Positions 56,327 to 58,301 of a stretch of DNA of 64,000 nt are shown here, one piece after another. The notes under the pieces were generated by a model. It was not told the DNA's origin. It was given only the letters and a program-made list of their open reading frames with translations, and did not search any database. Position numbers and translations under genes: made by a program. The DNA is from Pavona decussata (lineage: Eukaryota): the NCBI GenBank assembly GCA_977016875.1, contig CDRNST010000031.1:3348001-3412000 (forward strand), given 5' to 3'. The number at the start of each line of letters is the position of its first letter. Within the stretch, counting starts at the first letter, position 1.

Positions 56327-56873
56327 ATGTTTTTCGACGAAAGACTGCGAGGGCCCCAACCCATGGACTCCTCGGCGCCCCAAGATCTGATCGTTGAAAG
56401 CCTCACGGAAGAACTGTACAACCCAACGATCCCAAACGATGATTTCTGGAAAAAGTTTGCCCTCCCGACACCGCCATACTCTCCGGAGAACTATCTGCCC
56501 CAAGCCGGCTCTAAACGGAACTTCGTCATTCCATCGAGGAGAAACGGCCTACAAGTAGTACCAGAGCCTGAGGACCTCTCCTCGGATCTACCTCTGGTGC
56601 TCAGCGACGCTGAAATGGAGCGATTGACGTGTAGCACGATAGATGACGAGTACATTTGGCCGGCTGGCGAGAGTGATTTTGATCGTGTCGAGTCGCAGAG
56701 GTTTCAAGGCAATCGAGTTGTGCTTTCGGCGGCGTGTGTAAACGAACCTAGCGCTGAAACGGCGACCGATCACCGAATGCTACGCGATTTGCCTCCTTTT
56801 GTTGCCGCGGTCACAAACCAAGATCCCACACTCGCCCAGCAACAAGTGGATAGATGGCAGCCACATTACCCAG
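56327..56873 (+). CDS. myc: Myc-family transcription factor, paralog C (divergent), coding exon 1; gene model join(56327..56873,57871..58301), 325 aa
   Basis: MBI DDFWKKFALPTPPYSP; only a vestigial MBII (DDEYIWPAG). Donor CCCAG|gtgaat at 56873/56874 (phase 1) joins in frame to exon 2. Confidence 0.85.
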
Positions 56874-57870
56874 GTGAATATCGCACTTATTTCAATTAGA
56901 TATCGAAATTATTAACTTCGAGGTGTGGGAGTCAAAGTCCGTCTGGCAATTTTTTTCGACCATACAATTTCACTTTCGAATTCTAAATCAGCTTGCCTAA
57001 ACAGCCCATGAGAGTAGTTTCATTGACTTTAGTGACTCTTTAAACTTAGTTTGGTTTGGTTTTACAATCGCGTATAATAGGATAATTTAGTTTGCCTTTG
57101 TCACTTGTGAATCAGTGAAATTTGTTTTTGACTGAAGGCGCGCGACAGCATTTCCTTTGACGAGTTTCACGTCCCTCGCTATGCAACCATAGATTAATCG
57201 AGTTTGTCTGCGCTAAACAGCCTGAATAACAGAGTAAATGTTGACCGGTGATCCTTCTCATTAATGGAGTGTTTAAAATGCACGCTCGGTAGTTTCAAAG
57301 ACGAATTTTTTATTGCTACAGGCTTTGTTTATAAGTTCTTGCAGATTTTCACTTCACACTTGGCGCGTTTTTTGGTAAACTTTGGGCAAATGGCCACAAA
57401 TCACATGAGACTATTTCAAGTGATTTGGCGTTAGAAGATAATTTTACAAAAGCTTGAATCTAGATTGGTGTTTTTAACCGTCCGATAGTTTTCTTTTTGT
57501 CAAATAGAACATACAATCCCTCCTATGACAAGACGTCCTGGGCTAATTAAATCTTATTTTTTTATTTCGAAAACAGAAACGCTTCGAACAATTGGTTCAA
57601 GCAGTTGAAAAGAATCACCTTTGATTCACTATCAACAAATATCTGCCATCCCGCTATTAATTACTCAAGAAGTATCGAGATCTGTTGTTTGCTGTAAATC
57701 TAAGAGAAAAGGTTTGCCCCCGGCCATAGATACAAAAACTCAGCGAACATTTTAACCGATCAGGAATAGGTTAATTATTCGAATTTGCAAATTTCATTAT
57801 TAGGTTGCGCAGAGTAGTGTGGCGTCTTTAACTGATTCCGCTCCATGTTTCTTTTCTTTTTTTTTTTCAG

Positions 57871-58301
57871 TGGAAAATCCAGCGATGAGACTAGCCCGAC
57901 CCCCGAGCGAAGAGTTTGTCCCTCAACGATTCGACTGCGCAGCGTCCAAAAAACCCCGCAAGTCAAGAAGATCAAGTCGCCAGGATTCGCCTCCGATGGA
58001 AGGCGATGGGGATTCCGAAGACAACGAGACAAGCCGTGCAACGCACAACGTTTTAGAAAGGCAACGGAGAGAGGATTTAAAATGCCGTTTCCAGTTTCTT
58101 AGAGACAGTATACCAGAACTGGAAGATAACGACCGCGCATCGAAAGTTCTAATACTGAAAAAAGCGCGCGAATACGTGCATCAGTTGTACTTAGAAGAGG
58201 AACGGTTGTTAGCAGACAAGGAATTAGAACGCCAAAGGCGGCTAATACTCCTAGAGCGACTTGAGTGCTTACGGCAGGGTTACCCTGTAATGCATATGTG
58301 A
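57871..58301 (+). CDS. myc: Myc-family transcription factor, paralog C, coding exon 2 (bHLH-Zip)
   Basis: Long T-tract and ttcag|TG acceptor at 57870/57871. [49 protein letters not shown] plus zipper; TGA at 58299-58301. Confidence 0.92.

Follow-up and report, generated by a model that had tools for sequence, protein, structure and literature searches.

Can a member of the Myc family be turned into a brake on its own family? In the usual frame, Myc is the activator that competes for Max with Mxd/Mnt, the repressors of the Max network, which recruit Sin3 via SID. The question is raised by mycC, one of three Myc genes, all on the plus strand, in a stretch of 64,000 nucleotides of the stony coral Pavona decussata (contig CDRNST010000031.1, positions 3,348,001 to 3,412,000, or G000:C31:3348001-3412000), which is referred to as the window. 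An original prediction, made from the letters of this stretch, described mycC as a rewired gene lacking Myc box IIIb (MBIIIb), with an eroded Myc box II (MBII) and a PXDLS motif of the type that docks CtBP, and proposed it as a repressor Myc. All the motifs and positions named in that prediction were recovered from the sequence, and its interpretation is borne out in part. The answer preferred here, with moderate confidence, is that mycC belongs to an old clade of cnidarian Myc paralogues and is of the Max/E-box type, without a WDR5 tether and with a rebuilt activation-core module in which the motif, PEDLS, is one of several jointly constrained elements.

The Myc identity of the product is supported at both ends of the protein. 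Searches were made exon by exon, while the joined translation served for coordinates, motif scans and shuffles. The peptide FWKKFALPTPPYSP (residues 40-53) is Myc box I (MBI), which aligns to the N-Myc/c-Myc MBI peptides of PDB entries 5g1x, 7ztl and 7t1z; a PDB sequence search of the exon 2 product gave MBI peptides as the only accepted matches. The Pfam family Myc_N (PF01056) is detected at MBI at 23.9 bits, slightly below the cut-off of 24.4 bits, unlike in vertebrate Myc. The basic region HNVLERQRR (58044-58070) is identical to that of platypus and Xenopus c-Myc, so that MBI and the canonical E-box basic region are both kept, as had been proposed. The region of about 236 residues ahead of the basic helix-loop-helix leucine zipper (bHLHZ) retains MBI, the LQVVP block and the MBII tryptophan. 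AlphaFold2 was run on the close orthologue P0014 with an alignment of 19 rows, and in this model a continuous helix over 260-303 carries the leucine zipper on from helix 2. By position, the zipper retains the equivalents of E410, R423 and R424, while that of E417 is replaced by K. Dimerisation with Max is likely, because this zipper pattern is that of Hydra Myc3, a protein that binds Max and E-boxes (PMC10177328). Together with the basic region, the zipper sequence bears out the earlier assignment of mycC as a Max/E-box-type Myc.

The first coding exon product matches proteins that are 80-91% identical from coral assemblies, and the named matches of this exon belong to Oculina patagonica, Pocillopora verrucosa and Nematostella vectensis ('L-Myc-1b isoform X2'). 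Orthologues named as Myc were found in Oculina, Pocillopora, Nematostella, Exaiptasia, Dendronephthya and Rhopilema. The bHLHZ of mycC has 84% identity with that of Nematostella; the value falls to 71% for an octocoral, 64% for a scyphozoan and 53% for platypus c-Myc. All the orthologues named as Myc carry the zipper signature LLADKELERQR and the LQVVP box, and the scyphozoan proteins share with the clade the start, MBI, the NNLQVVPD box and the zipper signature. A tree of the bHLHZ was mostly unresolved (2 of 20 inner branches well supported, with long-branch warnings) and was used for one point alone, namely that the mycC clade has the shortest branches. Taken together, mycC represents in stony corals an old cnidarian Myc paralogue that evolves slowly and occurs in hexacorals, in octocorals and probably in scyphozoans.

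The most clear-cut difference between this clade and other Myc proteins is the absence of MBIIIb, the WDR5-binding box of vertebrate MYC and MYCN (PMC13270163). A search of the whole 602-Mb stony-coral genome returned three Myc-like genes in addition to mycA, mycB and mycC, giving six in total; one of these, L003 on contig C18, is a canonical Myc that is unlinked to the cluster and carries HDIWKKFELLPTPPRSP, LIQDCMWNG and EEEIDVV. In mycA, mycB and L003, the last exon opens with an IDVV-type MBIIIb (EEEIDVV in L003) after a phase-1 intron. The mycC intron is also of phase 1 (donor G|GT at 56873/56874, acceptor AG at 57869-57870), and codon 183 (GTG) straddles the splice junction, which gives the reading VENPAMR. 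Since the intron phase is equal to that of mycA, mycB and L003, MBIIIb is missing at the homologous boundary, and the replacement of EEIDVV by VENPAMR noticed earlier is borne out. A missed exon between 56874 and 57870, which would have supplied the box, is excluded: in seven full-length orthologue proteins, and in the transcript contig L030 of Pocillopora, nothing lies between the two flanking exons, and the intron of 997 bp encodes no IDVV-like peptide in any frame, its longest open stretch being 60 codons. Nor was a match to [ED][ED][IVL][DE]V[VTI] found in the nine full-length orthologues of the clade that were scanned. MBIIIb is absent from every member examined, including hexacorals, octocorals and the probable jellyfish orthologues, and the simplest reading of these sequences is that it was lost on the stem of the clade. 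The exon before MBIIIb closes with SSD[ST]G followed by gt in mycA (5520-5535), mycB (50120-50128) and L003 (1225-1235), and the mycC exon ends in PHYP instead, which means that the acidic serine stretch was lost together with MBIIIb.

The second difference lies between MBI and MBII, where mycC carries a block of 37 residues that is invariant in all stony-coral sequences. When compared with Pocillopora, 25 of the 37 codons differ, with 25 synonymous and 0 non-synonymous differences. It follows that silent divergence is saturated while the peptide is absolutely conserved. In this stretch, a proline-punctuated acidic strand (LQVVP-E-PEDLSSDLP) is followed by a short helix and the tryptophan. The LQ/LE position and the MBII tryptophan are separated by 37 residues in mycC, by 38 in L003 and by 37 in c-Myc. 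A global profile-profile alignment of the N-terminus of the clade against canonical Myc gave a probability of 97.6% and an E-value of 1.5e-11. With MBI removed, the local alignment still paired LQVVP with L[EQ]xV[ST]E and xxIW with DCMW, at an E-value of 0.0019. The block thus appears to correspond by position to residues 96-136 of c-MYC, which comprise the TBP/TAF1 helix and MBII; the support for this is modest, although directional. Human c-MYC places an amphipathic helix (residues 96-111) in the TBP-TAF1 groove and touches TBP with residues 96-125, and the adjacent MBII contacts TRRAP; the inter-box region and MBII make up the core of the activation domain in vertebrates (PMC10904854). In the AlphaFold2 model of P0014, the only helix predicted in the N-terminal region is DAEMERLT; the rest is disordered, with predicted local distance difference test (pLDDT) scores below 50.

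The MBII core itself was said to be eroded from DCMW to EYIW. EYIW is indeed what this coral encodes (residues 108-111), but the replacement of C by Y is confined to stony corals and does not characterise the clade: anemones have DCVW or DCIW, two coral sequences have DCIW or ECIW, octocorals have DTMW or DSMW, and the tryptophan is invariant across Anthozoa. The residues after the tryptophan (107-141, DFDRVESQRFQGNRVVLSAACV, at 56645-56749) are near-invariant in stony corals only. A match of these residues to DEPDC5 (residues 940-974) was rejected as chance, as its per-domain E-value was about 5 and was inflated by a duplicated chain. The similarity of the atypical Myc-like genes L005 and L006 to the block, which was seen by eye, was not significant in hhalign (E 0.14 and 0.02) and was not used as evidence.

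Taken as a whole, the protein can be read against vertebrate c-, N- and L-Myc and the coral L003. It has in common with them a gene of three exons in which a phase-1 intron precedes the last one, the MBI phosphodegron, a collinear inter-box motif (LQVVP in mycC as against LEMVTE or LQIVSD), a tryptophan at the MBII position, the basic region HNVLERQRR and a bHLHZ that is about 53% identical to that of c-Myc. It differs from them in having no MBIIIb (IDVV), no acidic SSDSG exon end, EYIW for DCMW, and a proline-rich acidic strand with PEDLS in place of the inter-box helix. The inter-box region is genuinely remodelled, and it is remodelled as one unit.

It could be argued that all this is the neutral decay of a redundant or dying tandem duplicate in which PEDLS arose by chance. 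Tandem Myc duplicates are present at this locus, a P.DLS motif turned up in 1.7% of composition-preserving shuffles of the mycC protein, and a looser, ELM-style CtBP pattern did so in 14%. However, neither the open reading frame (ORF) of mycC nor its splice sites are damaged, orthologues are spread over Anthozoa, and a transcript contig exists in Pocillopora. Given the bHLHZ identities to Nematostella and the octocoral, the conservation of motifs across the clade and the 0 against 25 codon changes in the block, decay is effectively refuted and is regarded as very improbable.

According to the preferred reading, mycC would pair with Max on E-boxes and be turned over through MBI. The 37-residue block would act as one composite cofactor-docking module, descended from the activation core of c-MYC 96-136, and PEDLS would be conserved as a part of that module, with no need for it to be a CtBP switch in its own right. 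Lacking the WDR5 tether, mycC would probably serve a different or narrower set of targets than mycB or canonical Myc. Three observations weigh against this reading. The homology of the block to c-MYC 96-136 scores modestly once MBI is removed; the three prolines in LQVVPEPEDLSSDLP do not allow the amphipathic helix that c-MYC has there; and PEDLS, treated here as secondary, exactly matches validated CtBP sites and lies in predicted accessible disorder. As the prolines preclude a helix of the c-MYC type, the partner of the block may have changed. On the sequence alone, the output of mycC may be either activation or repression.

The last of these objections leads to the proposal from which this work started, namely that PEDLS is a working CtBP dock, that mycC-Max actively represses on E-boxes, and that hexacorals therefore possess a Myc-family brake beside the activator mycB. 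Put in evolutionary terms, an ancient Myc paralogue of hexacorals would have exchanged its activation helix, the one between the two boxes MBI and MBII, for a strand that docks CtBP and become a Max-dependent E-box repressor next to an activator Myc. The first proposition is considered unlikely, and its evolutionary version is equally doubtful. PEDLS is encoded where it had been reported (residues 81-85). The identical pentapeptide is the CtBP site of IKAROS (PMC5393059) and one of two CtBP sites in ZNF366, where mutation of P and D to A abolishes binding (PMC1693901), and 50-residue tiles bearing PxDLS are CtBP-dependent repressive domains in Drosophila (PMC9890238). In the P0014 model, the site has pLDDT of about 50-54 and no secondary structure, as would suit accessible disorder, and the flanking prolines favour an extended conformation. 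Among the six Myc-like genes of this genome, mycC alone has P.DLS, against the chance expectation of 1.7%, and the adjacency of mycB and mycC is seen in Pocillopora as well.

The conservation of the motif was tallied at the aligned position in 49 clade sequences. PEDLS is present in 32 of the 49, that is, in every stony-coral sequence and most anemones. PEELS (three) and PDDLS (one, Actinostola) occur in anemone-type sequences; ADELS (one), AEELS with the proline moved by one (one) and PEDLF (three) in hexacoral-type sequences; PDDLV, PDELV and HDNLV in octocorals; and G[ED]DVQ in the scyphozoan proteins. The expected conservation of PXDLS therefore holds for Scleractinia and most Actiniaria, whereas the consensus is broken in other lineages. 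Some lineages have lost the proline, the serine or the spacing of PxDLS and yet retain the block, as in ADELS (P to A), AEELS (shifted P) and PEDLF (S to F); PDDLS and PDDLV place D at the hydrophobic x position, and the scyphozoans have no motif at all. The strictly invariant residues are LQVVP, L-S-S-D-L-P and S-D-A-E-M-E-R-L rather than P-x-D-L-S, so that P, D, L and S are not selectively conserved over their flanks, which are equally or more invariant. In other words, the conservation is not shaped like the motif. MBI and the MBII tryptophan, both hallmarks of an activation domain, are also retained. A similar PQDLI upstream (residues 18-22), which had been put forward alongside PEDLS, is present in the sequence but is not conserved as P-x-D-L, and it was set aside as a chance look-alike.

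The comparison with established CtBP sites points the same way. Those of IKAROS and ZNF366, and the PxDLS domains of Snail and Knirps, resemble the mycC site in being the same type of peptide (identical in IKAROS and ZNF366) within a disordered region of a DNA-binding transcription factor. In them, however, conservation forms a short island, with K or R often coming next, whereas the mycC candidate site lies inside a 37-residue invariant block, is followed by S-D-L-P and is replaced by non-consensus variants in sister lineages; the basic residue that follows in ZNF366, PEDLS(TK), is absent. CtBP itself was not located in the assembly by scans with PF02826 and PF00389 or by four degenerate patterns from CtBP peptides, which returned only GRHPR-like, PHGDH-like or unrelated loci; this exon-wise search is not a test of absence. 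No other protein of the Myc family is known to us to carry a co-repressor motif of its own. A repressive mycC would have the same logical role as Mxd/Mnt, namely a Max partner on E-boxes with a peptide that docks a co-repressor, although Mxd/Mnt belong to another bHLHZ subfamily and use another motif, the Sin3-interacting helix, whereas mycC counts as a true Myc on account of its basic region, its MBI and its gene structure.

Repression would not have to be active. A mycC without the WDR5 box and with a weakened MBII could simply titrate Max and E-boxes away from mycB and canonical Myc in the manner of Hydra Myc3. That protein binds both Max and E-boxes, and the proposal is that its complexes are inactive in transcription and shift cells towards differentiation (Lechable et al. 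2023, PMC10177328). Like mycC, Hydra Myc3 and the reduced-box Myc of Clytia are cnidarian paralogues with a conserved bHLHZ and missing Myc boxes, and for Hydra Myc3 an antagonist role towards canonical Myc was proposed (PMC10177328). The zipper of mycC shows the same three of four Max-selective residues as reported for Hydra Myc3, MBIIIb is absent clade-wide, and the MBII core is EYIW in this coral. However, Hydra Myc3 has 197 amino acids and no Myc box, whereas mycC has 325-337 amino acids and does not show the short, box-free N-terminus of that type. A mere competitor would need neither a long N-terminus with MBI nor a 37-residue block on which purifying selection is extreme. A link between the mycC clade and Hydra Myc3 was not established either, as a word search with the last-exon product matched no named hydrozoan protein. 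A purely passive role is considered as unlikely as CtBP recruitment.

The features of mycC are collected in the table below.

Table. Coordinates of mycC features in the window (all on the plus strand)
Feature	Position	Strand	Evidence or remark
Exon 1: 5' untranslated region (UTR) and 23-nt coding tip	53795..55029 (5' boundary approximate)	+	70-87% DNA identity to exon 1 of Pocillopora transcript contig L030
Exon 2 (exon 1 of the original prediction), encoding the disordered N-terminal region	56314..56873	+	Internal ATG 56327; Myc_N match E 4.1e-5
PQDLI	56378..56392	+	Proline column reads P/T/A/H/S/R/N in orthologues
MBI with T-P-P-x-S-P phosphodegron, FWKKFALPTPPYSP	56444..56485	+	PTPPYSP invariant in 27 orthologues
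37-residue block: LQVVP box, acidic proline-rich PEDLSSDLP, short helix, MBII remnant ending in W	56549..56659	+	Invariant in all stony-coral sequences
PEDLS, candidate CtBP-type motif	56567..56581	+	Read directly
DAEMERLT, predicted helix	56606..56629	+	AlphaFold2 of P0014: residues 82-89, pLDDT ~63
EYIW, remnant of the MBII core	56648..56659	+	Aligns to the DCMW position
Phase-1 intron, no hidden coding exon	56874..57870 (997 bp)	+	Seven spliced orthologue proteins and contig L030
Exon 3, coding part, beginning VENPAMR where MBIIIb is expected	57871..58301	+	3' UTR similarity extends to ~59076
Basic KKPRKSRRSSR, likely nuclear localisation signal	57948..57980	+	K[KR].RK.RR column conserved in anthozoan orthologues
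bHLHZ	58032..58280	+	Pfam HLH (PF00010) E 1.4e-13; pLDDT >95

The ORF that begins at ATG 56327 ends with a stop codon at 58299-58301 and gives a product of 325 amino acids. The gene model was compared with the Pocillopora orthologue, which is found whole on the 3,188-nt contig L030, assembled from a public sequencing run. On the Pocillopora genome, L030 forms three exons (a long 5' exon, a coding exon of 545 nt and the last exon), and the same boundaries are found in the window, including the acceptor at 56313/56314, together with a conserved 5' exon at about 53.8-54.8 kb. The arrangement is that of a Myc gene, in which the first exon is largely non-coding and a phase-1 intron parts the two principal coding exons. 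A conserved upstream ATG at 55007 encodes MFAATST and is followed by the donor GTGAGT at 55030, which was read directly. The segment 55007-55029 splices in frame to 56314 and adds 12 residues (MFAATSTLLCYD), in agreement with the isoform X1-type N-termini of Pocillopora (P0021), P0033 and P0034. ATG 56327 corresponds to the X2-type start, at which the octocoral and jellyfish relatives also begin. From these sequences, mycC probably has two alternative N-termini, and its length is 325-337 amino acids depending on the start.

The sequence GCGCGTGCC occurs three times in the window (0.15 expected), at 53898-53906 (+), 54325-54333 (+) and 54384-54392 (-). None of the copies is more than 500 bp from the conserved 5' exon and promoter region of mycC, and they are near a TATAAA at about 53940, and two of them are found at matching places in the Pocillopora orthologue. 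GCGCGTGCC, which contains a CGCGTG core, may be a regulatory site.

The window has a G+C content of 39% and two runs of N. In it, mycA lies at about 4.9-7.2 kb and mycB at about 49.6-51.0 kb. The tandem cluster is extended by L005, a fourth Myc-like gene about 4 kb upstream of window position 1 (G000:C31:3342451-3345717, ORF L005:40-1779). It consists of a single-exon ORF of 579 amino acids with a Myc-type bHLHZ that is 44% identical to mycC over 85 residues and with an AQVVPDF motif; no recognisable MBI was seen in it. The fifth gene, L006, is found on the minus strand of the same contig about 170 kb away (G000:C31:3170728-3173997, ORF 1486-2670). Its single-exon ORF of 394 amino acids contains NLQVVPQ, PSEDLSIYLP and a divergent bHLHZ with the basic region NKLERKRR. 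In Pocillopora verrucosa (CM071754.1, locus L029), a mycB-type gene of 374 amino acids with Myc_N and HLH is located at 4664-6048 and the mycC orthologue at 10001-13229. The two are thus 4 kb apart on the same strand with mycB upstream, as in the window, and since the same adjacent order is found, the pairing of mycB and mycC is conserved between distant stony corals. At the octocoral Dendronephthya locus (L028), no second Myc was found within 10 kb.

Cnidarians have several Myc paralogues, and Hydra Myc3 has been proposed as an internal antagonist (PMC10177328). A built-in cnidarian Myc antagonist therefore already has a published precedent (PMC10177328), whereas the CtBP route would be new. 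What the locus defines is a different, apparently undescribed type of Myc, which is Anthozoa-wide and probably Cnidaria-wide. It combines the slowest-evolving bHLHZ in the tree and an intact degron with the lack of a WDR5 tether and a rebuilt, extremely constrained activation-core block. The coreMYC region is a current focus of drug targeting. If the block docks partners of the TBP/TAF1 or TRRAP type, it would be a natural, proline-substituted variant of this region. If it docks CtBP instead, a Myc would be convertible to a repressor by the editing of one short region. Either way, the natural variants PEDLS, PEELS, PEDLF, ADELS and PDDLV provide a ready-made mutational series.

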